From: Macrostomum lignano
Taxonomy: Eukaryota
Assembly (NCBI GenBank): GCA_002269645.1
Contig: NIVC01001696.1
Coordinates: 1 to 64,000, forward strand
Reading direction: 5' to 3'
DNA: 64,000 nucleotides
Part shown: piece by piece, positions 5,545-64,000 of the stretch
Numbering within the stretch: position 1 is the first letter of the stretch
Layout: each line of letters starts with the position of its first letter
Program-made: the position numbers and the translations under genes
Notes under the pieces: model-generated
The model's input: only the letters and a program-made list of their open reading frames with translations
Database searches by the model: none
Told to the model about the DNA's origin: nothing

Positions 5545-6030
5545 GGCGCCAATATGAATGGCGCCAAGATAAAAGACACCAAGATAAAGGGCGCCAAGAT
5601 AAAAGGCGCCAAGATAATGGGCGCCAAGATAAAAGGCGCCAAGATAAAAGGCGCCAAGATAAAGGGCGCCAAGATAAAAGGCACCAAGATAAAGGGCGCC
5701 AAGATAAAAGGCACCAAGATAAAGGGCGCCAAGATAAAGGGCGCCAAGATAAAGGGCGCCAAGATAATGGGCGCCAAGATGAAGGGAGCCAAGATGAAGG
5801 GCGCCAAGATAAAAGGCGCCAAGATAAAGGGCGCCAAGATAAAAGGCACCAAGAAAAAGGGCGCCAAGATAAAAGGCACCAAGATAAAAGGCGCCAAGAT
5901 AATGGGCGCCAAGATGAAGGGCGCCAAGATAAAGGGCGCCAAGATAAAAGGCACCAAGATAAAGGGCGCCAAGATGAAGGGCGCCAAGATGAAGGGCGCC
6001 AAGATGAGTGGCGCTAAGATGAGTGGCAAA
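5545..6030. repeat. 15-bp minisatellite (GGCGCCAAGATAAAA)n
   Basis: Tandem array; explains the GAKIK and APFIL ORFs. Confidence 0.95.
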
Positions 6031-10621: not shown

Positions 10622-11779
10622 TCAGTCAGTCTTCCCGACGACTTTTCCGTTACTACTAACAGCGGCATTATTGTCCGCCAAGTCGTCGTCATCCTCAACT
10701 TCATTATTGTCGGACATCTCCGAATCCGAGCGGATGTCTCCATCAGTCTGGCCGGTGCGCAGCAGGTACAACACGATGCGGAATATGTAGTAGGTCCAGA
10801 CACAGTGCAACACCTGCAGCAGCACAAACATGCCAACGAACATGTAGTAGACAAGACAGGGTGGAATCTCCAGCGCTGGTAGACTGTGGGCGTACACTGA
10901 GTACACTACTCGGATTGGTAGAGCTACTAGCCTAGACAGGACCCAGACGATGAGAAACACGCCGAAAGTGGCGTCGCTCAATTTCTGAGCACCCAGGTAT
11001 TTTGCCAGCTTGCCAAACGACAGGAGGGGATCTACGGCGTCATGAATGACGAGTGTTAAAAGGCCAACCCTGGTGAAGTTGAACGCCCACGACAGCAAGA
11101 TCAAACCAATTGTAACCAGATGATGAGCTGTCAGCTCGTAGAAGTCCTTTCGTTTGATATCGGCTGTCAGAGTGATTAGGGAGGAAGCGTAGAAGCCCAG
11201 TTCGAGCATGTAGTACCAGAAGGCCGCTCGGCTGAGATGGTGCTGCGGCCAGTCAAGCCACAGGTGGCGGCTGTCCCAGAAGTGCGGCTCGTTCCACTGC
11301 AGCACGAGGCCATAGGTGACGAACACGGTGTAGTAGATGAGGTACCAGCTGCACTCGGTGAATCGAGCCAACTGAGTCGGTTTGTCGCGATTCCTTCGCA
11401 ACCGAAGCCAGTTTTCTACGGATCTCTCGCTGACGTTAGCCGTCCTAGCCAGCTCCTTCAGCTCGGCAGGTGCCAGGCGCCTTCGATGGCCCAGCAACGG
11501 TTCCAGAAGTCGCGTTCGAGCGGCGAACCAGCCCGGCAAGCGGACGCGGCGATCGGACAGTTTCAAGCGCTGTCCAAGTGGCTTAAGCAAACTGTAGTGC
11601 AGCATGCCTCGGAGGAGAAGCATCAGAATGGTGCACAGCACTCCGTAGAACCACAGGTCCGACAGTTGAGGCCGAGACACGCCCGGCACTACGGCTTTGA
11701 ACTTGTGCCACGGGTATGGATCGCGCAGCCACAGCCACCACGCTGGAGGCTGCTCTGGTGACCCATTGGAGGAAGACAT
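10622..11779 (-). CDS. CERS: Ceramide synthase (LASS/CerS; Hox-like domain plus TLC/Lag1 domain), intronless CDS, 385 aa
   Basis: ELKELARTANVSERSVENWLRLRRN (Hox-like); FTECSWYLIYY; YYMLELGFY; RKDFYELTAHHLVTIGLI; LVIHDAVD Lag1p motif. Confidence 0.95.
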   Translation of the reverse strand: MSSSNGSPEQPPAWWLWLRDPYPWHKFKAVVPGVSRPQLSDLWFYGVLCTILMLLLRGMLHYSLLKPLGQRLKLSDRRVRLPGWFAARTRLLEPLLGHRRRLAPAELKELARTANVSERSVENWLRLRRNRDKPTQLARFTECSWYLIYYTVFVTYGLVLQWNEPHFWDSRHLWLDWPQHHLSRAAFWYYMLELGFYASSLITLTADIKRKDFYELTAHHLVTIGLILLSWAFNFTRVGLLTLVIHDAVDPLLSFGKLAKYLGAQKLSDATFGVFLIVWVLSRLVALPIRVVYSVYAHSLPALEIPPCLVYYMFVGMFVLLQVLHCVWTYYIFRIVLYLLRTGQTDGDIRSDSEMSDNNEVEDDDDLADNNAAVSSNGKVVGKTD

Positions 11780-14500: not shown

Positions 14501-17500
14501 TCAAGCCGCAGAATAATACGCTTTGATAATCTTAACCTCTTCAACTGGTCGATCATTAGAGTCCGTAGCAACCAGACCGAGCTTCTGCACAGTTCTCATT
14601 CCGCTATAGACCCTTCCAAATATAGTATGCTTATTGTCTAGCCACTCAGTCGGGGCCAGTGTGATAAAAAACTGCGACCCGTTCGTATTTGGTCCAGAAT
14701 TGGCCATGCTGACTATACCAGCGCCTGAGTGCTTCAAGTCTGAATGGATCTCATCGTCGAAATGCTTGCCATAGATGGACGAACCGCCCCGACCAGTGCC
14801 CGTGGGGTCGCCGCCTTGCACCATGAAATCGCGTACGATCCGATGAAACTTCACGTCGTTATAGTAGCCGCGTTTCACCAGCTCAGCAAAGTTCTTGCAA
14901 GTTTTTGGCGCATGACGCCAATATAGTTCGATTTCGAATGAGCCCAAGCTGAGAAAGGAGAGTCAGGCAAGGAGAGCGCGAGTTGTTGGTGGGCCTTTGA
15001 TATCAAAGTAAAGTTGCCAAGAATTTGCTTTGCATGAGAACATTTTGTATTTGCAACAACAAGATCCTAGCAACCAATGTTGATAGTCAGGCAAGGAGAG
15101 TCAGGCAAGGAGAGCGCGAGTTGTTGGTGGGCCTTTGATATCAAAGTAAAGTTGCCAAGAATTTGCTTTGCATGAGAACATTTTGTATTTGCAACAACAA
15201 GATCCTAGCAACCAATGTTGATAATAGCTAAGCAGAATTATAGAGAAATGGTTTTCTATCTGGCAGTAGCAGCAATCATATCAGATATCAAACTGCAATA
15301 TGATGCTCTACAAAAGTGCACCTTCAACTTGATGACTTCAGCTTGACCTTCAACTTGTTGATACCAATTTTTTTATATGAAAAGCTTGTCTCTATATAAA
15401 AGAGCAATGGAATAAAGTGCAGGAAGCAATGGTAAAGCACAATACCTACTATGGCATCAATAGTGGGTAGCAGTATCAATGTGAGACCATTTTATGTCAG
15501 CAATTGAAGCATTAAATACTTGTAGCATACATAAATTTCTAAACATTAAGTGACTACTCATGATCTTTGTTACTTTTCCAGTTTTGACACATGAGTCAAA
15601 GTTTTTTCTAAGCTAAAAAGAACTTTAACTGCTGAGTGCAACACAATGGGTGACAATTGTCTACAATCTATTCTGCTACTCCAATTCTACTATAACACTT
15701 TTCTAACTCATTAAGAAGTTCTTCAAAAGTTTAAAATGAAGCATAGATGCATAGAAATTTTACTTTGAAGTGTTAGTGCTAGTGTTTTTCAATTTTTAGA
15801 ATTAATTTGGAATTGCAATCTTATGAGCTGTCCTACACTATATTATATTGTTTTAACATGCCTTAAAAAAAGAAAATAAATTATTTGTGACAAAAACAAA
15901 ACAAGCTTACTAATTACTTTTACAGATACTCGTTATACACTTAGTTTATTTTCAAGAAATATATAGTGATTGTATATTGTAAAACAAAATTCTTTGTCAC
16001 TTTGCAAGGCTTTTAAATCCTTGCATTCAAGTTTAGAAAATTAGTGTCTATAGAAGTTTTAGCAAATGCTTTGTACTTTTATTATTATGCTATAACTTTC
16101 TATCTTCAAATTATAATGAAGTTTTATCATTTAAAAACTACTTTCCTATGCTTTGAATATTATTTTGACAAGTGAAAAAATTAATTTGACATTTGTAATT
16201 TCCATGTTTATTTCATTGTCTATCTTTGCATGTAAGTTCAGCTAGGCCTATTATCCATACTCAGGAAGGTGGCCTGCACGCAGGAATTTTCCCGCGTGCA
16301 CAAGCCACGCTAAAATTTTGGCGTGCAAAGTTGGTGTGCAAATAGGGGTCTCAAGCCACGCCTAAATTTTCAGCGTACAAGTTTTTTACTTGGCGTGTAA
16401 CTTTGGCGTGCAATTACAAACTGACAGTATATCAACAAGTCAGATATAGATGTATACACTATATATATATAATATATAAAGTTAAACGTGAACAATTGAA
16501 TTTAAATATTGATTGAACCAACTAGTTTAGGCTACAGCCTAGCCTACAGCCAGGCCTACACTCTACAGCCTACATTAAAATTAAAATATCCAATAACTTT
16601 TAAATGCTCTTATTTTGTGACTCTTGTAGACTTTTAGTTTATTTGTTTCTTGAAATGTAAAGAAAAAGTTTTTGATACTCACTATGTTCTTCGTAGCAAA
16701 TTTCTTTTTTTTATATAAACTTTGTTTAACGTAAGTAGAAAATTTATTTAAAAATAGTATCTAATATGGTTAATATTCAAATCACACGTACATGAGGCGT
16801 AAATGATTTTCGGTATTCAAGATTTTTGGCATGCAACAAAAACGTCATATTAAGGGTTTTAAAAAATTGGCATACATTGGCGTGCACCAAGGATTTTTCC
16901 ATAAATTGATTCCCGCGTGCACTTGCCACCTTCCTGACTATGGCCTATTATTGTACTTGACTTTTGCAAGCATTAAGAATTGGTGATTCTAATTAGGCCT
17001 AATGTCTTGGATGCCAATTTTGGTTGGTCTTACATGATCATACATGAAATCCACCAACAAATTAAGTATATGCCTAATAGTTATTTTCTAGTGAATGAAT
17101 GCCAATTAAAATATAAAAATGCTCAATTTTTTATACTTAATCATGATTTGTATTTTAAGCACACAATATTGGCAAATGGTATCTCTACAAAACATTTAAT
17201 ATTAGTGCCCCAAAATTGCCACCTCCACCCAATACAAAATCCGACATACGCAATTGCCTAAATTGCTACTATTACCAAAATAGATATTCTTAAATAACTA
17301 AAATTAAATAAAGATACTCATTAAACAAACTAATGCCCTCAAGAAACTAGTTTTTTTCTAAATCTAAGTCTTTTAAAATTTACTTAAAAAGTAAAAACAT
17401 AAAATAAAATATATTTTTGCATTTTGTTTTGTCAGCCTTAGGCATAGCCAGTTTTGAACATGCCATTTTTGTGCTAGAATGAGCAAAATATAAGGTGATT

Positions 17501-17894: not shown

Positions 17895-18691
17895 AGAGGC
17901 CATTGGCATTGATTTAGTTCAATGGCCAAAATTAGATTAGCCTTATTGACAGAGAGTAGTATCAAGTTAGGCCTAGCTTTTAGAACTAGGGCCTAATTAC
18001 TTGAATACACAGTATAATATAAGCTGAACTTATGTGAACTAGGACCTACCTAGCAGTAAAGAAGTCACAGTATAAAATTTAAATAAAAAGAAAATTGCCT
18101 ATAAAGTATTAAGTCTATTCGACCTTTTAAATCAAAATATGCCCTACTCTGTTACTGTCAGCAGTCTCCAGTTGCAGTTTGACTTTTACTTTCTGGTTTT
18201 AATAGCCTACCCCTTTGGCCTTTTGTTTTAGGCTAGTCTACGCTCCAAATCTACTTTTTAGTTTTATGGAACTATGGAGTGTAGTTGTGAACTGGTATGT
18301 AGTCTTACAGACGTAGCTCTTAAGATAAGTTTATATCTAGGTGTAGTTCAACTAAGTATTAAATTTTATTTAATCAAAGACAATGGAGTATATCCTTTTT
18401 ACTGAAGGCGTGAAGCAACCCAGGCGTGCACATCTATGCGTGACGTCATAGGCCAAACAGTATTTTTTCGGAGAAAATTTTAAAACATCAACTTAATTTT
18501 TCATATTTTTCTATAGAAAAAACGCAAAACCTAAGAAAACTAAAAATATTCATTTGATTTTGTATAGTTCTTGTTTTTAAATACCGAATTTTTTGTTACA
18601 CTTGTTTTACTTTGTGCAATTAAAGTCCGTTAAAACGTGTTTTAAGTTCTTAAAGCCAAGCGCGGTGCGCGGCGCTGGAGAGGGAGAAATA

Positions 18692-30287: not shown

Positions 30288-31949
30288 TCTAGGCTATACA
30301 TGGCTTAAGGGAAAGTTGCTGAAAAGTTTTGCGGTCACAGTTAAATTGAGTATAGTAGAGTTGAGTTGAGCCATAGACAGCTGGCTTGGCGGGCAATCAA
30401 TAGAAAAGTATGGGGACTTTGTCTATGACCCAGAGCTGCTGCAGCCAATAGGCATTCTCCACTTGATCAGCTTGATTATCATCAACTTGACTAATCTGTT
30501 GGGCCATAGACTAAATGAGTTCGAAATAATCTAATCTGTCAGTGTAGTGTCTTGTGGCCAAAGCCAATGTTTTTAACAACAATTTTCATGTTCTTTTTCA
30601 AATTTTAATTAACTAAAGACTATATATTACTTAACACTAAGTAAATCTTATTGTCTGATTTTTAAAATGATTTCAACTGGAAAAAATGTTTTTCTTTTGT
30701 TTTTTCTATTATTTCTCTAGGAATTCTTGGAATTTGCCGTTTGTTTCTATCTATTTTTATACTTGTGAACATAGTTCTGACCGTCCGAACATTCTTTTAA
30801 GACTTTTTTCTCGCATTGATCCCTCCATCTTCGGATACTTTCCGTCCTGTTGTATGCGTACAAGAATGTTAAATATAGTTATAGAAAATGCTCACGACTT
30901 TATTATTAAAGCTGAGTTCAGTGCTGGTTACTGAACAGTTAATCGTCAATTGCGTTTAGATTTCGTTTTTTCGTGTCTTTAGGACCGATTGTTTAAACAT
31001 TCAATCTTACGAAACCAGTTAGTTCAATGAAGATCAGGGCTGGGCGATGCCTGATGAGGACCGAGAACTATAAAAGTAGCAGCTTTAATCCAACTCTAGC
31101 CCATGCGCAATTAAGTACTAGAAAAACTATAGATAGGCCACTCCGCATATTTGCGTGTAAACTACATGCACTATCAGTTTAGTTGTAAATTAATTAAACC
31201 GAAGCAATTTTTGTACTTTTAAACACAAGGCTCATTATTGGCTCTTAATTACCCCCCCACGCCCCCCCCCAGTAGCTTAAGCCCTCTAACTGCGTCTTGA
31301 CTCTTTCCACACAAAACCACTACACCCCCTTACCGCCGCCGAATTTTATTGCCTTTCTGAGTGTTTTAGCCTTAAGCTGCTATGTACATTTCAGTTTGCG
31401 TTGGGTAATGTACGTTTATGACTGAACCAATTACAATAGCAAGCCAGCTGTTCCGTGTTTTCGTCTGATATTCTACATTGAATTGCTAACTATCTATATC
31501 ACTCACCAATTCCCTCATTTTATTTATCTCTGTCGTATGTACAGCTTTTTTGTTAAAACAGTTTCAGGCTACTAGTATTAAAGAGACAACCACACAATTG
31601 TGTGCCTTCTGTTTGCCCTTTTTTCTACACTAACAGGAGGGATCCACCGACCCCCCACCCCCCCCCCCTACCGTGGCTTGAACCACCGCCCACCCCTCCT
31701 TTTCAGAAAATCGATACCCTCAATTTCGTTGTCTATACTCTATCCCCTTCTGCGCGTACAACAAATGCACATTAAGCCAGTCCTGGGCGCAACGCGACCC
31801 CATTTTTGGCTCAGCCAATCACAATGCAACAGACGGACTACAATTTTATTATAGCGTAATAATAAAATCAATGGAATGGAATGGTCAGTTTTGTAAATCA
31901 TACTCAGAACTGCCATTCGAAAGTGAATACGCTATTTTTCCGAGAAAAA

Positions 31950-34765
<2,816 letters not shown>

Positions 34766-45590: not shown

Positions 45591-45635
45591 GAAAGTCAAG
45601 GACAAGACACGGCCTTCAATATCACGCATCACGCA

Positions 45636-47489
45636 TCCTAGATCCCAGATCCTAGATCCCAGATCCTAGATCCCAGATCCTAGATCCCAGATCCTAGATC
45701 CCAGATCCTAGATCCCAGATCCTAGATCCCAGATCCTAGATCCCAGATCCTAGATCCCAGATCCTAGATCCCAGATCCTAGATCCCAGATCCTAGATCCC
45801 AGATCCTAGATCCCAGATCCTAGATCCCAGATCCTAGATCCCAGATCCTAGATCCCAGATCCTAGATCCCAGATCCTAGATCCCAGATCCTAGATCCCAG
45901 ATCCTAGATCCCAGATCCTAGATCCCAGATCCTAGATCCCAGATCCTAGATCCCAGATCCTAGATCCCAGATCCTAGATCCCAGATCCTAGATCCCAGAT
46001 CCTAGATCCCAGATCCTAGATCCCAGATCCTAGATCCCAGATCCTAGATCCCAGATCCTAGATCCCAGATCCTAGATCCCAGATCCTAGATCCCAGATCC
46101 TAGATCCCAGATCCTAGATCCCAGATCCTAGATCCCAGATCCCAGATCCTAGATCCCAGATCCTAGATCCCAGATCCTAGATCCCAGATCCTAGATCCCA
46201 GATCCTAGATCCCAGATCCTAGATCCCAGATCCTAGATCCCAGATCCTAGATCCCAGATCCTAGATCCCAGATCCTAGATCCCAGATCCTAGATCCCAGA
46301 TCCTAGATCCCAGATCCTAGATCCCAGATCCTAGATCCCAGATCCTAGATCCCAGATCCTAGATCCCAGATCCTAGATCCCAGATCCTAGATCCCAGATC
46401 CTAGATCCCAGATCCTAGATCCCAGATCCTAGATCCCAGATCCTAGATCCCAGATCCTAGATCCCAGATCCTAGATCCCAGATCCTAGATCCCAGATCCT
46501 AGATCCCAGATCCTAGATCCCAGATCCTAGATCCCAGATCCTAGATCCCAGATCCTAGATCCCAGATCCTAGATCCCAGATCCTAGATCCCAGATCCTAG
46601 ATCCCAGATCCTAGATCCCAGATCCTAGATCCCAGATCCTAGATCCCAGATCCTAGATCCCAGATCCTAGATCCCAGATCCTAGATCCCAGATCCTAGAT
46701 CCCAGATCCTAGATCCCAGATCCTAGATCCCAGATCCTAGATCCCAGATCCTAGATCCCAGATCCTAGATCCCAGATCCTAGATCCCAGATCCTAGATCC
46801 CAGATCCTAGATCCCAGATCCTAGATCCCAGATCCTAGATCCCAGATCCTAGATCCCAGATCCTAGATCCCAGATCCTAGATCCCAGATCCTAGATCCCA
46901 GATCCTAGATCCCAGATCCTAGATCCCAGATCCTAGATCCCAGATCCTAGATCCCAGATCCTAGATCCCAGATCGTAGATCCCAGATCGTAGATCCCAGA
47001 TCGTAGATCCCAGATCGTAGATCCCAGATCGTAGATCCCAGATCGTAGATCCCAGATCGTAGATCCCAGATCGTAGATCCCAGATCCTAGATCCCAGATC
47101 CTAGATCCCAGATCCTAGATCCCAGATCCTAGATCCCAGATCCTAGATCCCAGATCCTAGATCCCAGATCCTAGATCCCAGATCCTAGATCCCAGATCCT
47201 AGATCCCAGATCCTAGATCCCAGATCCTAGATCCCAGATCCTAGATCCCAGATCCTAGATCCCAGATCCTAGATCCCAGATCCTAGATCCTAGATCCCAG
47301 ATCCTAGATCCCAGATCCCAGATCCTAGATCCCAGATCCTAGATCCCAGATCCTAGATCCCAGATCCTAGATCCCAGATCCTAGATCCCAGATCCTAGAT
47401 CCCAGATCCCAGATCCTAGATCCCAGATCCTAGATCCCAGATCCTAGATCCCAGATCCTAGATCCCAGATCCTAGATCCCAGATCCCAG
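45636..47489. repeat. 14-bp satellite (ATCCTAGATCCCAG)n, ~1.85 kb, nearly invariant
   Basis: A dimer of 7-bp units; includes a block of eight C>G variant units at ~46970-47080. Confidence 0.98.
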
Positions 47490-47905
47490 AGGGTGACATT
47501 CGGTCAGAATACATGTCAGTAGTAAATTGTAATGTAAGTTACTCTACAAAATGTATGGTACAATTTTGTTCTCATGCAGTTGTATAAGATTTTTAAAAAG
47601 TTTCATTTTTTATTCCTTTTATAAAAGACCTGCTGCCTTTTTACATTTATAATTTCTTCGTTGTAAAAGTATTGTAAGGCCACGCTAAAAAACTCTCTCA
47701 GTGCTGACATAGATTCTCTACTTATGTTCGTACTAATTAATTCATAGGCTTGACCAGCACGTGACATAGACATTCACTCTTTCTTTGTTAAATTGTTAGA
47801 CACGAAATTAAATTTAATCTGTTCTCAAAAGTTGCTCAAATCGTAAAACGCTTTGCAGACTGAATTTTCTACAATTAATATAGCTTTCAAAAGCTGCTAT
47901 TTACG

Positions 47906-49886
47906 ATGCCAAACACCGTCAATGTTAGTGTCGAATACTGGTAAGTCATCAGCCTATGTTTTATTTTTAGAGAGTTTCATTTATCTCAGTATACGTACAT
48001 GTATATAGATTGTCTTTTTTAGACAGTAAATTTGATTGGGGTTACTGTGGAATTGCTGAGATGCCAAGGGTTAGTGGGGAATTGCTGAGATGCCAAGGGT
48101 TACTGGGGAATTGCTGAGATGCCAAGGGTTACTTGGGAATTGCTGAGATGCCAAGGGTTAGTGGGGAATTGCTGAGATGCCAAGGGTTAGTGGGGGAATT
48201 GCTGAGATGCCAAGGGTTAGTGGGGGAATTGCTGAGATGCCAAGGGTTAGTGGGGAATTGCTGAGATGCCAAGGGTTACTGGGGAATTGCTGAGATGCCA
48301 AGGGTTAGTGGGGAATTGCTGAGATGCCAAGGGTTACTGGGGAATTGCTGAGATGCCAAGGGTTACTGGGGAATTGCTGAGATGCCAAGGGTTAGTGGGG
48401 GAATTGCTGAGATGCCAAGGGTTAGTGGGGGAATTGCTGAGATGCCAAGGGTTAGTGGGGGAATTGCTGAGATGCCAAGGGTTACTGGGGAATTGCTGAG
48501 ATGCCAAGGGTTACTTGGGAATTGCTGAGATGCCAAGGGTTACTGGGGAATTGCTGAGATGCCAAGGGTTACTGGGGAATTGCTGAGATGCCAAGGGTTA
48601 CTTGGGAATTGCTGAGATGCCAAGGGTTACTGGGGAATTGCTGAGATGCCAAGGGTTAGTGGGGGAATTGCTGAGATGCCAAGGGTTAGTGGGGGAATTG
48701 CTGAGATGCCAAGGGTTAGTGGGGAATTGCTGAGATGCCAAGGGTTACTGGGGAATTGCTGAGATGCCAAGGGTTACTTGGGAATTGCTGAGATGCCAAG
48801 GGTTAGTGGGGGAATTGCTGAGATGCCAAGGGTTAGTGGGGGAATTGCTGAGATGCCAAGGGTTACTGGGGAATTGCTGAGATGCCAAGGGTTAGTGGGG
48901 AATTGCTGAGATGCCAAGGGTTACTGGGGAATTGCTGAGATGCCAAGGGTTAGTGGGGAATTGCTGAGATGCCAAGGGTTACTGGGGAATTGCTGAGATG
49001 CCAAGGGTTACTGGGGAATTGCTGAGATGCCAAGGGTTACTGGGGAATTGCTGAGATGCCAAGGGTTACTTGGGAATTGCTGAGATGCCAAGGGTTAGTG
49101 GGGGAATTGCTGAGATGCCAAGGGTTAGTGGGGGAATTGCTGAGATGCCAAGGGTTAGTGGGGGAATTGCTGAGATGCCAAGGGTTAGTGGGGAATTGCT
49201 GAGATGCCAAGGGTTACTGGGGAATTGCTGAGATGCCAAGGGTTAGTGGGGAATTGCTGAGATGCCAAGGGTTACTGGGGAATTGCTGAGATGCCAAGGG
49301 TTACTGGGGAATTGCTGAGATGCCAAGGGTTAGTGGGGAATTGCTGAGATGCCAAGGGTTACTGGGGAATTGCTGAGATGCCAAGGGTTACTGGGGAATT
49401 GCTGAGATGCCAAGGGTTACTGGGGAATTGCTGAGATGCCAAGGGTTAGTGGGGGAATTGCTGAGATGCCAAGGGTTACTGGGGAATTGCTGAGATGCCA
49501 AGGGTTACTGGGGAATTGCTGAGATGCCAAGGGTTACTGGGGAATTGCTGAGATGCCAAGGGTTAGTAAAATCTCTACTGATCATCTATAATTCCCCTCC
49601 CCCCCAACCTTACAGCAGCGTCCAATGAGACTACGAACCACGCTATGAGCACCTGCGCGAAGCAATTCTCAGCGCGTGCCCTAGCGGAGTTCAGGTATCC
49701 GGTGTTGCTGGTCGTCGGGGCGCTTACGAGGTGACAGTCAATGGCCAATTGATTTTCTCTAAGCTGAAGATGCGCTGTTTCCCCGTTGAGAAACAGGTGG
49801 TCGACGAGGTGAAGAAAGCCACGAATGGTGTGAAGCCTAAGAAGCTGGGATCAGATACCGGAGGTTGTGGATGTCATCTATTGTAG
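47906..49886 (+). CDS. MIEN1: Selenoprotein W2/MIEN1-like (Rdx family), paralog A; exons 47906-47940 and 49616-49886; Sec TGA at 49626-49628; 101 aa
   Basis: MPNTVNVSVEYC|SVQUDYEPRYEHLREAIL...GRRGAYEVTVNGQLIFSKLKMRCFP...GCGCHLL*. The frame stays open and homologous for 85 codons past the TGA; the TGA is shared with paralog B; SECIS in the 3'UTR. Confidence 0.92.
48040..49566. repeat. 29/30-bp minisatellite (GGGGAATTGCTGAGATGCCAAGGGTTACT)n in the paralog A intron
   Basis: About 52 units filling most of the intron. Confidence 0.98.
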
Positions 49887-50044
49887 CGCTATTGGCTTCG
49901 TTTTTACTTAATTTTCTTGATTTCTCTCTCATAAACGAAGTCTTTTTTCAATGAATAAACAGATTTTGATATTTGAAATGTATATTTCTACTTTAAGTAG
50001 ACTAAATAGTAGCATAAATTGAATTCAGAAACAAAAACAAATAG

Positions 50045-50184
50045 AAAAACCAGCGCGTGCCCAGACGTATGACGACAGGCCTCGGCGTTAAAATCCTAAT
50101 TGGAACCGTCCGCAGCATCGCACCGGATGGGCGCCACTTGTCTGACACACCTATCTGGCTGAGTCTGTGCGCGCGTTGGTTTTT
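50045..50184 (+). promoter_or_regulatory. SECIS element (atypical) of paralog A
   Basis: ATGA 50069-50072 / TGA 50143-50145 core; GACAGG:CTTGTC and GGCGT:GCGCC helix II; AAAA 50090-50093; TCC-TAATT-GGA mini-stem; 22-position basal helix. Confidence 0.85.
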
Positions 50185-50579
50185 TGGTTTCATTTAAACA
50201 AAAAAACTGTGAAAAAAGTTACGTTTATAAGAGGAGAAAGAAAGAAAATAAGTTGTGGCAGAAAAGTGTCTTAAAAGTAACTTTTGATTTATTCGGCATC
50301 AAATATACATGTATCTTGAAACATAGTTCATTTTTTTGCTTCATGCAGTCGCATGCTGCGCTACTTTTAATATCAAGGTTGAATACTTTTCTAGCGGCTT
50401 TTTTATGAAGGGCTACTTAAAAAAAGAATAAAAATACTAAATAGTTTGCTTGACTTGTGGACCATTAAAGATATGTACATTATGCTTAAATTAGAAAAAA
50501 TATACTATAGTTAGGGCAAGTTAGCTTAAAAATTTGTTAATTAGAAGAAAGTTAAAAGATAACTTTAAAATGGAAGAAA

Positions 50580-52363: not shown

Positions 52364-52637
52364 GGCCAGATGTGCAACCGACAGCTCCGCCGCAGCTATT
52401 TTGCGGCGCATCTGAAGACTGCGTTCAGTCCAATTAAGGACTGGGGTCGCCACACACCCTGAATTACCCCAGCTAATGCTGGCACCAATTTTACAGCTGG
52501 GTGAACTGAAGCAAATAAATGCAGAGTTTACATGTAAAATATCTTCTTGATCGTGCTGCACACAAAATTGTTCCAGTGGGATCGGGAATCGAATCCCCAA
52601 CCTTCAAGTCGTGAGTTTGACGCTCAACCACTAGGCT
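52364..52637 (-). mobile_element. tRNA-derived CORE-like SINE (copy 3)
   Basis: Minus strand A-box TAGCCTAGTGG and B-box GGATTCGATTCC; homologous to copies 1 and 2. Confidence 0.8.
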
Positions 52638-53009
52638 AAAACATTTTATAATAAATATTTAATTGCCTTAAAAATATAAAAATGAATACACCTTTTTTAC
52701 GCATGCATCTATTACATACAAAACATGTATGCGTTTTTCCTTTACCTTTAACATGCTTTACGCTAACTAAATTTTACATAATGTAGTAATACAGTTTTCT
52801 GACTTTGTTCTGTATTAAAAATGCTTTTGGTTTTTACATTTTGCGGAAACATTTGTTAACTTTTATGTTTGTTTTTATCGCGGTAATACAGTTTTTATAT
52901 AAAATGAATTTTCAGTGCTAAAAAAATAAGGAAACGGCAACGCATCATAATAAAATATTAAATAAACCTTAACATTCTTAGAGACAGAAGTTACTTTACG
53001 TCGTTTACG

Positions 53010-56000
53010 ATGTCGCACCCCGTTACCGTTAGTGTTGAATACTGGTAAGTATCATTTTATTAATACTTTAACAGTTGAACTTGATGCACTAAAAAGATTA
53101 AAACATAGGGGATAGGTGGGTGGGGCTACCTTCTTCTTTAGTAGTACTATATACTAACTTTGATGCCATTGTATCCAAATGTCAAATCTGTTGAATCGGT
53201 TTTGAATCGATAGAAATCCACTAGGCCTATACTGAAATAGTTAGCTACAAGAATCTGTTAGGCCTAGTTTTTACAATAAATGAATTTAATTAGCAAACTA
53301 CGCCTAATTCCATTCTCTCTTGCTGTCCAATTGGTACAAACAGTTTTTATGAGGATAGGCCTAGTATAGAAGCGTTAAAGCTATACCCAAAGTTCCAGAC
53401 CAGTATCAGTCTAATAGGCCAACTATTTTTATATTTGTACATGCATGTGTTTCTATTATAATAAAGTTTGTGGCTATTATTAAGTGTTTAGGCCTATTTA
53501 GAGATGGATAAATAGTCTATTTTTGTATAGGCCCTATATGTAGAGTAATTATTATTAGTGTTGCTTCTCATCTCAACAAAACAAGAATATTTTATACAAT
53601 ATTTCTATTGCATTAATTTTGAAGTAAGTTGTATTAATATATTTATATTCTTGAAGGGGTAATTAAGCTAAGTTGGGAATCCTACAATGGCCACCAAGTT
53701 GTTCCAGGGGGTTCTATCTGGCTATTCACAATCCTACGGCTGTCACCAAATTGTTAGAGGATTTTATTTTTAATTTTAACCTATCCTGCTGATGCTACAG
53801 AACTCTTGAGTATCCTGGAATGAGTTTTATAATTTTAAAGGTTCATGTATAAGCTAGCCATTTAAACCAGTTAGAATTACTAGAATTACTAAGTTACGAG
53901 GTTAGAACTATGGGCTTTCATGTAAGTACGGATTGCCCTAGTAGCGCGTAGTGCCTGAGCAGCAAGACACTGTTTAGCTAAGGGGGTGACTAAGTCCTAA
54001 AAAGCAGTCATCTCCAATGGACCAAGGGTGCCCAGTGAATTCTTGTTTCCTATCTACAGATTTGCTTGTGTCATTCACGACCTGTCATTGGTTGTTCGAT
54101 TCGAAATAGCCACTGGGATAATTCTCCCTTGTCTATTGGCTGATCACGCCTCTGTTCTTTGCGGGTCCGCTTATTGGCTCATAGACTGTTAGTCTGATAC
54201 TCTTGGTAGATTCCACCTTTGCCCAATGAGCAGTCGCTCTCAGCTTTTGACAAATAAAGAAGGCTTGAACACCTCTAATTTTCTTAGGCAAATCGCCTCT
54301 ATATTCAGGATCGAGTAAAAAGCTCAGTCGCCTCTTTGGGTGCAAAACTCCCATGTATTTATAATAAGATTGGGGTGGGGGACCAGATTCATTTAAACAA
54401 AAAATATTTTCCAAGTTATGTTTCCATAGTGACGCAAAAATTTAAATTGGGCCTACATCAATGTTAAGTTTATTTACTTGCTAAGAACCATAGTCGGAAT
54501 AGTTTCCATGCATTTTGGTGCTTAGCATTTTGGTACTCCAGATTGCTTTTTGGTGCTCTAGTTTATGATGCCTAAATAATAATAAAAAGTAATATAATAG
54601 CAAATATAATAAATACTTTACAAAACATTTAGTATTTCTAATGAAAGCTATAATCCAGTAGGCCTATCTATTTTTTTTTCAATTGGCATGTCTTTTAAAT
54701 TTTGAAAAATCAGGTCAATTTAATTGTATGCACTTTTCGAATCCTTTATTACAATTATAAGGTTGCACTGCACTTAGCATGCATGCTAAGAAGAGTTATT
54801 TAGGTAAAGATGAAATCTATCAATAATGCTAAATGTAGTTTTGATCAAAATTATGGAATGGCACAAATCTATTCTAGTATTGATTTCTTGAGTCACATGA
54901 TTCTGTTTTATTTCTTAAAAAATCAAATTGAAAGAAAAAAATTACATGAAACAAGACCATTTTTTAATTTAAACCCAGGTCAGCTTAACAAAATGAATAC
55001 CTAAGTTATTAAATAAATAAGTATTATAAAGCAAAGTGCTTACTGCTAAATAGGGCTCATTTTTTATATTTTTGTGTTAACTCTAATTTTTAATTTAGGC
55101 ACCAAAAAGCAAACCGGGGTACCAAAATGTAGGGCAACAAAAAGGGTAGATACCGTCTAGATCATGCTAGGTGCATACCCAAATAAAACTTGAATAATTA
55201 CAAATGTATGCCAGAAAATTGAGTGTAGTGAATTAATTTTATAGATAAACAAAGTTTATTTACTTGCTGAGAACCATAGTCTTGATCATTCATGCCCTAA
55301 CAAAAATTAAATATATAAATGTATGCCAAAAAATAGAGTGCACACCTATTCTCAAAACTAAGCTGATTTTGCGACATTAAGTGACCTTTATATTTTTGTA
55401 TTTTTATATTTGTATTTTTATATTTTTATATTTTTGTGTTAACTCTAATTTTTAATTTAGGCACCAAAAAGCAAACCGGGGTACCAAAATGTAGGGCAAC
55501 AAAAAGGGTAGATACCGTCTAGATCATGCTAGGTGCATACCCAAATAAAACTTGAATAATTACAAATGTATGCCAGAAAATTGAGTGTAGTGAATTAATT
55601 TTATAGATAAACAAAGTTTATTTACTTGCTAAGAACCATAGTCTTGATCATTCATGCCCTAACAAAAATTAAATATATAAATGCATGCCAAAAAATAGAG
55701 TGCACACCTATTCTCAAAACTAAGCTGATTTTGCGACATTAAGTGACCTTTTTTATATTCTACTTTATAATAACTTTTCTATGATTCTATAAAATATATA
55801 CCAGGTATGCATGCATACTATTTTCTTAATAGTGATGTACACCAACTGTACATGCCTACTTTTGGCATGCAAGCAGTGTTGGGCACTATTAATGAAAATC
55901 TTAACTTTGTTAATGGCAAAAGCATTAGTGTTAAAACAAAAAAATCTTAACCTATTCACTTTTAATTTTGTTAAATTAACTAAAATTTAACTGATAATTG

Positions 56001-58936
56001 CTATTAAGTGTTAATCTATTAAAGTTACCACAGAAAATACAGAAATCTTGCAAAACAAACTTCATAATATACTGTCTGCTTTTCTACCTTTTAGCAAAAC
56101 ACTGAGATCATTTAAGGGATTTATAAGCTAAGAAAGTAAAAAATAATAATTTAAAAAACTTTTATGTGTAGTAGGGCAATATTTTAGGAATGGGAATTAG
56201 TAGCAAAGCAGATATGCTTTTTGCCTACTGTCAGTAGTTTAGGTTTAGGAAAGTAATTAGAGTGGGGGAAAAGCACTAGTTTTCGGGATTCCTTAGAAGT
56301 ATAGAGCAGTTTGGGGCTTGGGAAGCAGATTTGTTCATTCGCAGACTCGCAAAGTCTCAAATTAGTCTCAAATCACCGCGAGGCTATGGTTTTGTCTCGC
56401 ATAGAGGCGCCTAACCGCAGTACCTCTGTGAAACTTGTCTCTGCCTGGCTGAAAGCTTGTAATGAGTGAGTAGGCTGGGTTGGAGGGTAATAGTGGATCG
56501 GGAAGGGCTGTGGGTAGCTATATAGGAAGGCAGGCCTATACCTGTTCCAGTTGGTGCTTTGACGGTCTCCTTCAAGTGCCCTCTGAGCAAACAGCCAGCG
56601 ACCCTATTATAGCTGGAGTGTGCCAGAACCAGGACTGAGTCTGAGCAGGACGAGACCATTGGCATGGTCACTATAGAAATGGTCGGTTGGCGAAGCAAAG
56701 GGTGAAATAGTCCCGGCGATTAGCCCTCCTGCCGCTTCAAAGATAAGAGACTGTCTGGCAAGAGTACCCGGGGTTTAGTTGGGGGGGGAGGCTCTTTTGG
56801 GCTGCCACGGCTGTGGGGGCGGTCATATGACCAGTTTTTGGCTTTTCTAACCCATGGGATTCCTGACTGGTACATCCTTCCGCTGTCACTGTCCCCCAGG
56901 AAGGTTTTTGATTTGTCAATTGCCCTTTGTACAGTCCTCTTAGCTCCAATTAGGATCTCAGTGTACATAAGTACACTCCCAACCTGGAATTAATTTATAT
57001 CTAGTGGTGTAAGAGCCTAATCAATGGCTGAGGCGCCAAATACTTATTACTGTTACTGCTTGGGAAGCAGATTCGTTCGTTTGTGGACTCGCGAAGTCTC
57101 AAATTAGGAAAGGTAAGAGGCAGGAAAAATATTAGGAAATACGTAAAACTGTTAGTGGTAGTCGATGCCAACAACAGTACACTACAAGGTAGTCAATGCC
57201 TAGCTTTTCCCACAAGTAAAGTAACAATAACCATTGCATGCTGATTTTCTTTTCTTTTTTTGAAATAAAAAAGTTTTGTTAAATATTTTGGTTTTCCTGT
57301 GTCACTCCTTATCACTAAATTAATAGAAATAGGGAAGCAGGAAGCCTGGTGGCAGCAAATCTACCAAAATCTAAAACCAGTAAATCCACTAGTAAAATCC
57401 TTAGCAATAGAAAACCAGTAGCCCTAACCGCGAGGTACCACGCATGTCCATATGTATATAATACTACTAAAAATAAGCATATGGTAAAAAGGTCAGAGGT
57501 AACTCATTTATTTGAAACTTGAAAGCTAATTGATTAATAATAAAATACAAATATAAAGGTTGTTTCAATAGCATTAGTAAGTGCAGCAGAAAGTTAAGAA
57601 AAATTGGGAAAGAAGTGAATCAAAGTAATTGATGCTCATGCACAAGCAATAACATAATTTTAATTCATTATTAAAGTTCATTAGTAAGAAGTTATTATAT
57701 TTGCATCATCATTGTTAAAAACAAAAATGTTAATTATGTATTTAGATAAATTGAAATACATATTGCAATGTAACTTCTTGCCAGATTTATATTTTTGTTC
57801 TTTTTTGCATCCTTGGTCATTGACATTGCCATTAACGTTAAGGATGAATAAGGGATATTATTAATGCAAATTTGTTAATCCATTAGTGCAAAAAATCCTA
57901 ATGGCAGTCTATTAATGTTAATGAAAAATTCTAATGCTTATTAATGGATAAATGCTTATTAATGGACTAGTGCCTAACACTGCATACAAGGCCAATGCAC
58001 ACCTAAATTTTTGGGTGTACACTATACTATACTATATGCATGATCCAGTGTTTAGGCTAAGAACTATGTAAATACCAGTGTCAAGATCATATATTAGTAT
58101 AGGCCTAATGTATACCAGAACAAAATTTGCTTCTTGACTCTAGCTCATAGCTTTTATACTCATAAGCCATATATGCGCAACTGCTGGCCAACCTGGCCAA
58201 TCCAGCCACTGTAAATTATATAAGCTTTGTATTATATGCTAAGCTAGGTAATAGTCTAGCCTATTGACATAAGAGATCAGGCTGAGTGGCAAGTGGGAGC
58301 CAATACAAAAGCAGGGCCACAAAAGCCTTAACATGATCTGGGGCAACAAGGATGTGGAATTTTATTTGTATACACATTTGTGGACTAGTGTACTGTTGTT
58401 GCCAACCCAAGAAAAAGCAAGGGAAGAAAAGGAAAGAAAGCAAATTAAGAAAAAACAAATATGTGACTGTGACAATCTGCAATCAAAAGCAATAAGTAGT
58501 ATTAATAGCTTTAAATCATATTTAAAGGGTTGAAGCCAGTCTTTGCTTAGTTAGATGCCGAGACATTTTACTGGAGCAGCACAGTCATAATTACTCCTGC
58601 CGTTTACCCAGTTGCGATTTTTATTGAGCATATATCCTTACTGGTTATCCCAATTTCACCCAATGCAGTGGCAGCGGATGAGGCTACGAACCCCGCTATG
58701 AGCACCTGCGCAGAGCTATTCTCAGCGCGTGCCCCAGCGGGGTTCAGATCTCCGGTCACGATGGTCGCCGGGGCAGCTTCGAGGTGACAATCAATGGCCA
58801 GCTGATTTTCTCCAAGCTGAAGCTGCACGGCTTTCCTGATGAAAATCAGGTTGTCGAACAGGTGAAGCGAGCTACAAATGGCGACAATCCTAACGTACTG
58901 GAAGATTCTCAAAGTCCCGGATGTAATCTGCTGTAA
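53010..58936 (+). CDS. MIEN1: Selenoprotein W2/MIEN1-like (Rdx family), paralog B; exons 53010-53044 and 58669-58936; Sec TGA at 58679-58681; 100 aa
   Basis: MSHPVTVSVEYC|GSGUGYEPRYEHLRRAIL...GRRGSFEVTINGQLIFSKLKLHGFPDE...SPGCNLL*. Very similar to fish SelW2 (VEYCGGUGYEPRY...GSFEIEINGQLIFSKLE, from memory); SECIS present. Confidence 0.93.
55063..55757. repeat. ~362-bp tandem duplication in the paralog B intron
   Basis: Two near-identical copies (e.g. TACCGTCTAG at 55151 and 55513). Confidence 0.92.
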
Positions 58937-59093
58937 TGCTGTGCTTCGCTATTAACTTTTCATTTACAATCTCTCCGAAGAGCGTTTTCTCTTTTTTACA
59001 ATGAATAAACAAATTTAGACGGTCAAAAACGTATATTTCTACTGTAAGTAGACTAAATAGTAGCATGAATTGAATTTCGTCAAAAACAAATAG

Positions 59094-59255
59094 AAAAACC
59101 AGCGCGAGCCCAGACGTATGACGACAGGCCTCGGCGTTAAAATCCTAATTGGAACCGTCCGCACCAGTACACCGGATGGGCGCCACCTGTCTGATATTAT
59201 TGGCTAAAACTTTGCTTGACATTGTTTGGCTAAGTCTGTGCGCGCGTTGGGTTTT
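59094..59255 (+). promoter_or_regulatory. SECIS element (atypical) of paralog B
   Basis: ATGA 59118-59121 / TGA 59192-59194; GACAGG:CCTGTC (G-C where paralog A has G-U); same AAAA, mini-stem and extra hairpin. Confidence 0.85.
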
Positions 59256-59639
59256 TTGGTTTCATTTATAAACAAAAAATTACATTGATATGATTAGAAA
59301 GAGAGAAAATCACTTTGTGGCAGAAAAGTGTCTTAAAAGTAATTTTTGATTTATTAAGCGTCAAATATATCCTAAAACATTGTTTTTTTGCTTTCTGTGC
59401 ACTCGTATGCTGTGCAACATTTATTCAGGTTGAAAACTTTTTACCCGCGGTATTTTTGGACCGATACAATTAAGCTCTGTGTTTTATTTAAAGGCCACTT
59501 AAATTGAAATATAAAATATAATAAATCAGAATTCTACGAGTGTAAGTTACTCGCCCACTATAAAATCTCTCAATTTTAACTTTATTAAAGAGTAAAAAGT
59601 TTTCGAGTTTTCTAATTTTTACTTTTCACCTATCCAGTG

Positions 59640-61803: not shown

Positions 61804-61904
61804 CTGCGGGGGGTTGCGAAATTTTAGGATCCAAGGACTGCTAACCAAGGTCAGTTAAAGGAGCTCAGAGCAGCTCAGCGGTAATTACGATCAAGGGTCA
61901 GAGA

Positions 61905-64000
61905 ACGTCATGCTGAATCAAGTGTCACAGAACGTCATGCTGAATCAAGTGTCAGAGAACGTCATGCTGAATCAAGTGTCAGAGAACGTCATGCTGAATC
62001 AAGTGTCAGAGAACGTCATGCTGAATCAAGTGTCACAGAACGTCATGCTGAATCAACTGTCACAGAACGTCATGCAGAATCAACTGTCACAGAACGTCAT
62101 GCTGAATCAAGTGTCAGGGAACGTCATGCTGAATCAACTGTCAGAGAGCGTCATGCTGAATCAACTGTCAGAGAACGTCATGCTGAATCAACTGTCAGAG
62201 AACGTCATGCTGAATCAAGTGTCAGAGAACGTCATGCTGAATCAAGTGTCAGAGAACGTCATGCTGAATCAAGTGTCAGAGAGCGTCATGCTGAATCAAG
62301 TGTCACAGAACGTCATGCTGAATCAACTGTCAGAGAACGTCATGCTGAATCAACTGTCAGGGAACGTCATGCTGAATCAAGTGTCAGAGAACGTCATGCT
62401 GAATCAAGTGTCACAGAACGTCATGCTGAATCAACTGTCAGGGAACGTCATGCTGAATCAACTGTCAGAGAGCGTCATGCTGAATCAAGTGTCAGAGAGC
62501 GTCATGCTGAATCAACTGTCAGGGAACGTCATGCTGAATCAAGTGTCAGAGAACGTCATGCTGAATCAAGTGTCAGAGAACGTCATGCTGAATCAACTGT
62601 CACAGAACGTCATGCTGAATCAACTGTCAGGGAACGTCATGCTGAATCAACTGTCACAGAACGTCATGCTGAATCAACTGTCAGAGAACGTCATGCTGAA
62701 TCAAGTGTCAGAGAACGTCATGCTGAATCAAGTGTCAGAGAGCGTCATGCTGAATCAACTGTCACAGAACGTCATGCTGAATCAACTGTCAGAGAACGTC
62801 ATGCTGAATCAAGTGTCAGGGAACGTCATGCTGAATCAACTGTCAGGGAACGTCATGCTGAATCAAGTGTCAGAGAACGTCATGCTGAATAAAGTGTCAG
62901 GGAACGTCATGCTGAATCAAGTGTCAGAGAGCGTCATGCTGAATCAAGTGTCACAGAACGTCATGCTGAATCAACTGTCAGAGAACGTCATGCTGAATCA
63001 AGTGTCAGAGAACGTCATGCTGAATCAAGTGTCAGAGAGCGTCATGCTGAATCAAGTGTCACAGAACGTCATGCTGAATCAAGTGTCAGAGAGCGTCATG
63101 CTGAATCAACTGTCAGAGAGCGTCATGCTGAATCAAGTGTCAGAGAGCGTCATGCTGAATCAAGTGTCACAGAACGTCATGCTGAATCAAGTGTCACAGA
63201 ACGTCATGCTGAATCAACTGTCAGAGAACGTCATGCTGAATCAAGTGTCAGGGAACGTCATGCTGAATCAACTGTCAGAGAACGTCAAGCTGAATCAACT
63301 GTCAGAGAACGTCATGCAGAATCAAGTGTCAGAGAACGTCATGCTGAATCAACTGTCAGGGAACGTCATGCTGAATCAAGTGTCAGAGAACGTCATGCTG
63401 AATCAAGTGTCAGAGAACGTCATGCTGAATCAACTGTCACAGAACGTCATGCTGAATCAACTGTCAGAGAGCGTCATGCTGAATCAAGTGTCAGAGAGCG
63501 TCATGCTGAATCAACTGTCAGGGAACGTCATGCTGAATCAACTGTCACAGAACGTCATGCTGAATCAACTGTCAGAGAACGTCATGCTGAATCAAGTGTC
63601 AGAGAACGTCATGCTGAATCAACTGTCAGGGAACGTCATGCTGAATCAAGTGTCAGAGAACGTCATGCTGAATCAAGTGTCACAGAACGTCATGCTGAAT
63701 CAACTGTCAGGGAACGTCATGCTGAATCAACTGTCAGAGAGCGTCATGCTGAATCAACTGTCAGAGAGCGTCATGCTGAATCAACTGTCAGAGAGCGTCA
63801 TGCTGAATCAACTGTCAGAGAACGTCATGCTGAATCAAGTGTCAGAGAGCGTCATGCTGAATCAAGTGTCACAGAACGTCATGCTGAATCAACTGTCAGA
63901 GAACGTCATGCTGAATCAAGTGTCAGAGAGCGTCATGCTGAATCAAGTGTCAGAGAGCGTCATGCTGAATCAAGTGTCAGAGAGCGTCATGCTGAATCAA
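61905..64000. repeat. 27-bp satellite (AGAGAACGTCATGCTGAATCAAGTGTC)n, runs off the window end
   Basis: About 77 units with three polymorphic positions; lies in an intron of the ankyrin gene. Confidence 0.98.

Follow-up and report, generated by a model that had tools for sequence, protein, structure and literature searches.

Thioredoxin-like redox centers are held to be defined by a spacing of two residues, CxxC or CxxU, and this spacing proved invariant in every relative examined here. The closest described system is SELENOW2/MIEN1 (C17orf37, Rdx12), the SelW2/Rdx12 group having been described in vertebrates and platyhelminths, with selenocysteine (Sec) forms in fish, frog, shark and platyhelminths and with tandem duplicates in zebrafish (PMC3316567, PMC3828610). 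The window analyzed here, positions 1-64000 of contig NIVC01001696.1 from the Macrostomum lignano assembly Mlig_3_7, contains two tandem paralogs on the plus strand, A (47.9-50.2 kb) and B (53.0-59.3 kb), which homology identifies as Sec-containing SelW2/MIEN1-like genes of the Rdx family. One protein fragment encoded in the window falls on the same coordinates of that record, the NIVC accessions are those of the genome paper, and cluster mates bear M. lignano protein names. It would appear, at roughly even odds (about 0.5), that splicing mainly uses the first of two closely spaced AGs in both genes, yielding centers with three residues between Cys and Sec (Cx3U: CSVQU in A, CGSGU in B), with probable wobble to the second AG at A only. 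The departure from CxxU spacing reads as certain for B and as probable for the major product of A.

The Pfam model Rdx (PF10262) matches both A and B along its full length (profile positions 1-74) at E = 1e-18 to 1e-19, scoring 69.7 and 67.3 bits, respectively, against a cutoff of 22.6. The best match among solved structures is human C17orf37/MIEN1 (2LJK, E = 2.7e-16), with SelW (2NPB) reaching only 3.7e-4, and the relatives carry names such as "migration and invasion enhancer 1(-like)" and "Selenoprotein W, 2a/2b". Like SELENOW2/MIEN1, the two genes have the Rdx domain with the beta-1 strand V.VEY-C, the string (G/D)Y.PRY after the Sec or Cys, and a CaaX-like C-terminal box, CHLL or CNLL as against CVIL; they also share with SelW2/MIEN1 relatives a phase 2 intron inside the Cys codon. 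The CaaX-like ends lie at 49872-49886 (A, ...GGCGCHLL*) and 58922-58936 (B, ...SPGCNLL*); the C-terminus of the Schistosoma ortholog is CNLL, that of most relatives is C-x-[ILV]-[LM], and that of human MIEN1 is CVIL. Unlike SELENOW2/MIEN1, the first-AG product of both A and B would have three residues between Cys and Sec, where 30 relatives and 7 outgroup genes have two. Between the paralogs, the second exons share 77% DNA identity and 69% protein identity. The top match of the representative search (P0004) was rejected as a false positive, being a 2899-aa ankyrin-repeat protein aligned through "INGQLEMSKYL" repeats.

The only alignment of A with B upstream of the second exons covers 52 nt at 82.7% identity and takes in ATG, eleven codons and TG, followed by GTAAGT. 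The coding part of exon 1 of A (47906-47940, plus strand as are all gene features below) reads ATG CCA AAC ACC GTC AAT GTT AGT GTC GAA TAC TG, or MPNTVNVSVEY + TG, and is homologous to that of B (53010-53044), MSHPVTVSVEY + TG. Each encodes the beta-1 strand V.V.EY-C that precedes the redox Cys across the family. Apart from GTAAGT (47941-47946 in A, 53045-53050 in B), no usable donor was found after exon 1; since the sole usable donor comes right after ...EY + TG, the intron falls in phase 2, inside the Cys codon. The initial annotation had claimed that an intron cuts the catalytic Cys codon (TG|Y), and this is borne out, both first exons ending ...GAA TAC TG|GTAAGT. The intron runs from 47941 to 49615 in A (to 49618 with the distal AG), where it consists mostly of a 29-bp minisatellite, a very regular array of 52 copies at 48039-49565, and from 53045 to 58668 in B, a length of 5.6 kb. 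Counted from the proximal acceptor, the coding part of exon 2 extends over 49616-49886 in A (ending ...GGCGCHLL*, with the stop TAG at 49884-49886) and over 58669-58936 in B (ending ...SPGCNLL*, with the stop TAA at 58934-36). An AG-free stretch of 38-47 nt, holding pyrimidine tracts and branch-like motifs, lies ahead of the first AG in each gene (49567-49613 in A, 58629-58666 in B).

The bases flagged by the initial annotation would be the 3' end of this intron. In A the tandem acceptor AG-C-AG occupies 49614-49618, within cttaCAGCAG (CAGCAG at 49613-49618, the two AGs at 49614-15 and 49617-18), and the region reads ccttacAGcAGcgtccaaTGA, i.e. ccttacAG|cAG|cgtccaaTGA. The proximal AG leaves 10 nt to the UGA and gives TG|C AGC GTC CAA TGA, or C-S-V-Q-U; the distal AG leaves 7 nt, the outgroup register, and gives TG|C GTC CAA TGA, or C-V-Q-U, so that the choice of AG adds or removes one Ser. 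In B the tandem acceptors gcAG|tggcAG| occupy 58667-58674 (AGs at 58667-68 and 58673-74) in the region aatgcAGtggcAGcggaTGA, i.e. aatgcAG|tggcAG|cggaTGA; the proximal AG, again 10 nt from the UGA, gives C-G-S-G-U, and the distal AG, at 4 nt, gives C-G-U. The position in B that would correspond to the canonical 7 nt reads GG, not AG. The products that the initial annotation had assigned to the proximal and distal sites (CSVQU/CVQU in A, CGSGU/CGU in B) are thus read directly from the sequence and its translation, and translating each of the four options confirms that none loses the frame or the Cys. Its description of the A-distal product as canonical CxxU agrees with the two-residue spacing of the relatives, 30 out of 30.

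These relatives come from a profile search of 1.84 billion representatives with window-exact post-Sec pieces, which returned 340, and the motif count uses the 30 whose N-terminus was captured. Spacing from Cys to Sec or Cys is two residues in all 30 (24 CxxU, 6 CxxC), and one or three residues in none. A attains Cys-x-x-Sec/Cys after beta-1 only via its distal AG, and B by neither AG. Exon 1 ends in ...(E/Q)(Y/H/F)+TG|GT in six genes, from Pomacea canaliculata, Lampetra planeri, Schistosoma turkestanicum and three Patiria miniata tandem paralogs, which marks the intron as ancient and its phase as fixed. In seven of seven outgroup genes, 7 nt separate the first AG from the TGA and the motif is CxxU: Pomacea (cag|TGGCAAATGA, CGKU), Lampetra (cag|TGGTGGCTGA, CGGU), Schistosoma (tag|TGGAGGATGA, CGGU), Patiria paralogs 1 (cag|CAGCGGATGA, CSGU), 2 (cag|CGGTGGATGA, CGGU) and 3 (tag|TGCCGGATGA, CAGU), and Dreissena (cag|CGGTAGATGA, CGRU). 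A Paralvinella homolog (P0036) was left out as an outgroup, having no in-frame TGA at the junction (WNKDEY). Against all seven, the first AG of M. lignano stands 10 nt before the TGA in both A and B, one extra in-frame triplet.

The most parsimonious origin of the 10-nt spacing would be one insertion before the A/B duplication, because both paralogs have exactly 10 nt, gap-free from first AG to TGA. The spliceosome would mainly take the first AG in A and B, making Cys-x-x-x-Sec products; the second AGs would be by-products of Ser AGC codons following the C; the CAGCAG at A would wobble, so that some canonical CVQU is made as well; and the second AG at B, four bases on, would be used rarely if at all. 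We favor the first AG as the homologous coding boundary in both genes for three reasons: the gap-free alignment of A with B from that AG to the TGA, the resemblance of the proximal products to family motifs plus a middle residue (C-S-(V)-Q-U to the CSQU of relative P0065, C-G-(S)-G-U to the commonest motif, CGGU), and the absence from all 30 relatives of a Val directly after Cys, which the A-distal product would have. Ser or Gly after the Cys and Gln or Gly before the Sec do occur among them.

Several observations weigh against first-AG splicing to Cx3U. The invariant CxxU/C spacing of the family is an argument that Cx3U would impair the protein, and A meets that spacing through its distal AG only, which restores the 7-nt register and gains 7.4 bits on the Pfam Rdx model (69.7 vs 62.3). 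One human CAGCAG minigene is spliced 92% at the distal site, so "first AG dominates" is no rule for NAGNAG acceptors, and the data on splice choice were obtained in human cells rather than flatworms. The A/B alignment around the acceptor is short and ambiguous, and the ratio of nonsynonymous to synonymous divergence (dN/dS) given below averages both lineages, which leaves room for a recent loss of function in B.

In a rival account, A is a canonical CxxU gene spliced via its distal AG, the upstream CAG being a recent silent or minor intronic AG, while B underwent an independent 3-nt exonic insertion and is neofunctionalized or slowly degenerating. The distal AG of A shares the register of 7/7 outgroup acceptors, CxxU/C is the motif of 30/30 relatives, and RRP12-type CAGCAG acceptors are 92% distal. 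When the spliced products are scored against Pfam Rdx with Sec written as Cys, A distal (CVQC) gets the best score of the four real options at 69.7 bits, ahead of B proximal (CGSGC) at 67.3, B distal (CGC) at 65.4 and A proximal (CSVQC) at 62.3; a hypothetical B with CGGC would score 73.6. Such an account requires, however, two independent +3 events within the same 10 bases of two paralogs, and it gives A a Val after Cys that is absent among the 30 relatives. The first AG of A follows a clean AG-free pyrimidine region, and B is under purifying selection with its signals intact. On this evidence a canonical A with an independently altered B seems somewhat unlikely.

The tandem AG arrangement by itself is ordinary and not beyond chance, because 13-16% of the AGs in the window, acceptor-like YAGs behind a pyrimidine tract included, have a second AG at +3 or +6; the chance of finding it in both paralogs together is about 0.02. 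The unusual feature is the distance from first AG to UGA, not the tandem AG. CAG|C arises when a Cys codon finished by C is followed by Ser AGC, and both M. lignano second AGs stem from such an AGC. CAGCAG is found at the same intron in one of the seven outgroup genes, Patiria miniata MIEN1-like paralog 1 (locus L009, TGA 2520), which resembles A in having CAG|CAG|C before the Sec and whose distal option is also C-G-U. Its cacag|cag|cggaTGA, with a canonical proximal AG, makes plain that TG|C + AGC is enough to produce CAG|CAGC. Unlike that paralog, in which the proximal AG gives the canonical CSGU, M. lignano A gives Cx3U at its proximal AG and the canonical spacing at its distal AG alone. 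Locus L009 holds three tandem Sec MIEN1-like paralogs (TGA at 2520, 7980 and 15354), each with its own ...E(Y/F)+TG|GT exon 1. In Dreissena polymorpha (L010, 7185-7971) at least six tandem pseudo-copies of "acceptor + 7 nt + TGA + GGTTAYGCC..." lie upstream of the real Sec exon, one of them with a cag|cag NAGNAG.

As to which acceptor is used, about 6% of human acceptors are NAGNAG, and 39% of those in the "plausible" HAGHAG class are confirmed by expressed sequence tags as alternatively spliced in human; use is species-dependent, with 0.7% confirmed in C. elegans (PMC1669710). The CAGCAG of A is a HAGHAG motif at the intron-exon boundary of a coding phase 2 intron and in this is like the NAGNAG acceptors of TassDB ("wobble splicing"). 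The indel at A differs from the typical one in that it would sit inside a redox-active motif and not in a tolerant surface loop. B differs from NAGNAG altogether, its AGs lying 6 nt apart with four nt between them. Two human CAGCAG minigenes gave proximal/distal use of 62/38 and 8/92, and in a human CAGCAG minigene widened by up to four bases the proximal AG became almost exclusive; AGs within 6 nt of one another can compete. We expect both AGs to be used at A, and B to be spliced mostly at its proximal AG. A CGSGU/CGU switch at B is unlikely, because AGs with four nt between them were spliced almost exclusively at the proximal one in the human minigenes.

The initial annotation had gone further and proposed that both acceptor pairs are used, in a ratio regulated by tissue, stage or selenium to tune redox geometry, with up to four motif isoforms. 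That all four options are in frame, that CAGCAG is a plausible NAGNAG and that AGs so close can compete are in keeping with this proposal, as is, weakly, the B intron, three copies of which are invariant over the last 76 nt, against 4% difference over the 192 nt before them (P about 0.04). It is countered by the rate of about 13% at which acceptor-like sites are expected to have a tandem AG at +3/+6 by chance, by the four-base gap in B that favors the proximal AG, and by the Ser AGC codons that explain the second AGs, as in Patiria. In the library searched, no paper was found that joins NAGNAG with selenoproteins, nor any joining Macrostomum with selenoproteins at the sequence level. Regulated switching among these isoforms seems improbable, and a fixed lineage-specific Cx3U is likelier than a four-isoform switch. 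We regard as unlikely the combined claim that a free-living flatworm lineage has re-spaced the otherwise invariant Rdx center to Cys-x-x-x-Sec in two selected paralogs and that NAGNAG wobble toggles A between Cx3U and the ancestral CxxU.

B encodes CxxU by no GT-AG splice. Among the candidate rescues, GTTGAA at 53034 is a poor donor, a donor 4 nt downstream brings in TAA, the acceptor 58671|58672 would be GG and not AG, and intron-less read-through gives CSGSGU and no start. In trans-splicing a spliced leader can donate an AUG, and with a leader-donated AUG joined onto exon 2 the frame fits neither acceptor. Assembly error was likewise rejected as the source of the extra triplets, three contigs being in agreement.

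Splicing at the distal AG of B would yield a CGU protein with CxU, a working motif in SELENOF (Sep15); the one-residue spacing of C-G-U would be like that of SELENOF, whereas SELENOF is of another family, and its thioredoxin-like fold sets the motif in another context. The Gly after the Cys would be kept (C-G-U-G-Y), and the Pfam score is just 1.9 bits below that of the proximal product (65.4 vs 67.3). The first AG is unobstructed, however, the 4-base separation favors it, and it is the proximal cag|TGG that matches the ag|TGG acceptors of Pomacea, Lampetra and Schistosoma. A CxU protein as the product of B is accordingly hard to credit.

B looks functional, and neither an assembly error nor an old pseudogene, because three copies agree, dN/dS points to purifying selection and its signals are intact. 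Divergence between A and B stands at dS = 0.60 with dN/dS = 0.34 (0.24 in the domain core), and B retains its start codon, donor, acceptor region, SECIS-like (selenocysteine insertion sequence) element and C-terminal C-x-L-L. From acceptor to UGA the sequence is identical in three genomic copies of B (the window and the loci L002 and L003) and in two of A, with flanks that differ by 1-6%. It could be held instead that the extra triplets are assembly errors, or that the genes are pseudogenes whose motif variants have no meaning. In favor of this, the assembly was built from long reads, a 1-nt deletion breaks the frame in the L002 copy of A, and no exon 1 lies within 10 kb of the L003 copy of B. 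Set against this are the agreement of copies with diverged flanks in three contigs for B and two for A, the fact that a 3-nt insertion is atypical of long-read error, and the intact open reading frames (ORFs), donors and SECIS-like elements together with a dN/dS below 1, which make an artefact very improbable.

The deletion in the second copy of A (L002, on NIVC01001400.1, 97% identical) lies at about 100-105 of that locus, equivalent to 49681-49686 of the window, and changes CCCTAGC to CCCAGC. It may be an assembly error rather than the mark of a pseudogene, because a protein from an older assembly has these substitutions and yet reads through. For B, the third copy (L003 1-5826, on NIVC01000996.1) runs collinear to the window from about 54487 onward only, and neither exon 1 nor paralog A was found within 10 kb upstream of it; it represents a structural variant or else a partial duplicate.

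The in-frame TGA is read as Sec at 49626-49628 in A, where the Rdx ORF runs on to the TAG at 49884-49886 and homologs have TGA at the same position, and at 58679-58681 in B, where the Rdx ORF continues through. The UGA stands directly before (D/G)YEPRY in A and B, as it does in homolog P0005 and the seven outgroup genes; the "W" printed by automatic gene calls at the Sec position is a TGA in P0005, the one homolog checked. Downstream lie putative SECIS elements, at 50063-50150 in A (AUGA 50069-72, AAAA 50090-93, 3' UGA 50143-45) and at 59112-59200 in B (AUGA 59118-21, AAAA 59139-42, 3' UGA 59192-94). Each is a stem-loop with AUGA, an AAAA bulge or loop and a 3' UGA, and the core is about 94-100% identical between the paralogs, the call resting on fold and paralog conservation. 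The bases that vary between the two lie in the apical loop, apart from a single G-U/G-C change in the lower helix. The Rfam SECIS model gave no match in the window at gathering score or E <= 10, a negative that is uninformative since the model was also blank on four ortholog loci.

Alignment columns 101-250 of the 3' untranslated region (UTR; 49985-50200 vs 59035-59270) are 90-94% identical, compared with a dS of 0.60 in the coding sequence, which suggests strong constraint or gene conversion limited to the UTR. Both paralogs also keep CAATGAATAAACA, which contains AATAAA (49954-49959 in A, 59004-59009 in B) about 70 nt past the stop codon, the SECIS-like element following about 110 nt later. 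Should this AATAAA serve as a poly(A) signal, the transcript would end ahead of the SECIS and its translation would stop at the UGA.

The annotation of Mlig_3_7 is described as built on transcripts (TBONE/TransDecoder). The public models PAA68382.1 and PAA73720.1 (P0001 and P0002) and A0A1I8HGK5 (P0003) are without exon 1, the Cys and the Sec, and start at YEPRY, one residue past the Sec; A0A1I8HGK5 fuses A-like and B-like parts as a 397-aa "Selenoprotein W". A start at YEPRY is the position expected if the predictor took the AG inside TGAG| to dodge the stop, and the public models are no evidence of real splice-site use. Public models of the Patiria miniata MIEN1-like paralogs also begin after the UGA. 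A word-indexed protein search with spliced A matched only the window's own B fragment, and the spliced A and B junctions, with either acceptor, had no match in two metagenome scans.

Elsewhere in the window, the minus strand carries a retroelement ORF fragment with aspartyl protease and reverse transcriptase (1061-2533) and an ORF with a TLC domain (TRAM/LAG1/CLN8) at 10622-11779, and the plus strand an ORF with a protein kinase domain at 31881-32615. Two more minisatellites are present, one of 14 bp x 134 upstream of A (45635-47490) and one of 27 bp x 78 at the end of the window (61890-64000), where array length varies between allelic or homeologous contigs. A weak tRNA-like match on the minus strand at 52584-52638 (20 bits, E = 2.5), about 370 nt upstream of B exon 1, may be a tRNA-derived repeat. 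In the B intron just 5' of the acceptor (58570-58654, plus strand) there is a weak Rfam SNORD87 match (23 bits against a gathering score of 50, E = 1.1), with a 14-nt exact match in the guide region, UGCCGUUUACCCAG, and no clear C or D box seen; it may represent a snoRNA relic or a chance match. The Schistosoma turkestanicum ortholog locus (L008) has, above Rfam gathering thresholds, two mir-3492 precursors (5598-5675 and 14968-15045), one of them inside the first intron of the MIEN1-like ortholog, and two type I hammerhead ribozymes (17369-17417 and 17946-17994).

A and B are both mis-annotated in public records, and, going by their CaaX-like ends, they would be prenylated selenoproteins. Should only one acceptor be used in each gene, they would be an ordinary selenoprotein gene pair with an unusual motif in B. 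A selected gene unable to encode CxxU would be a natural experiment on ring size in selenenylsulfide chemistry, the more so next to its sister gene A, which may encode both spacings from one NAGNAG. In A a splice wobble would then fall in a catalytic motif, and a 3-nt splice choice would alter the active-site chemistry of a selenoprotein.

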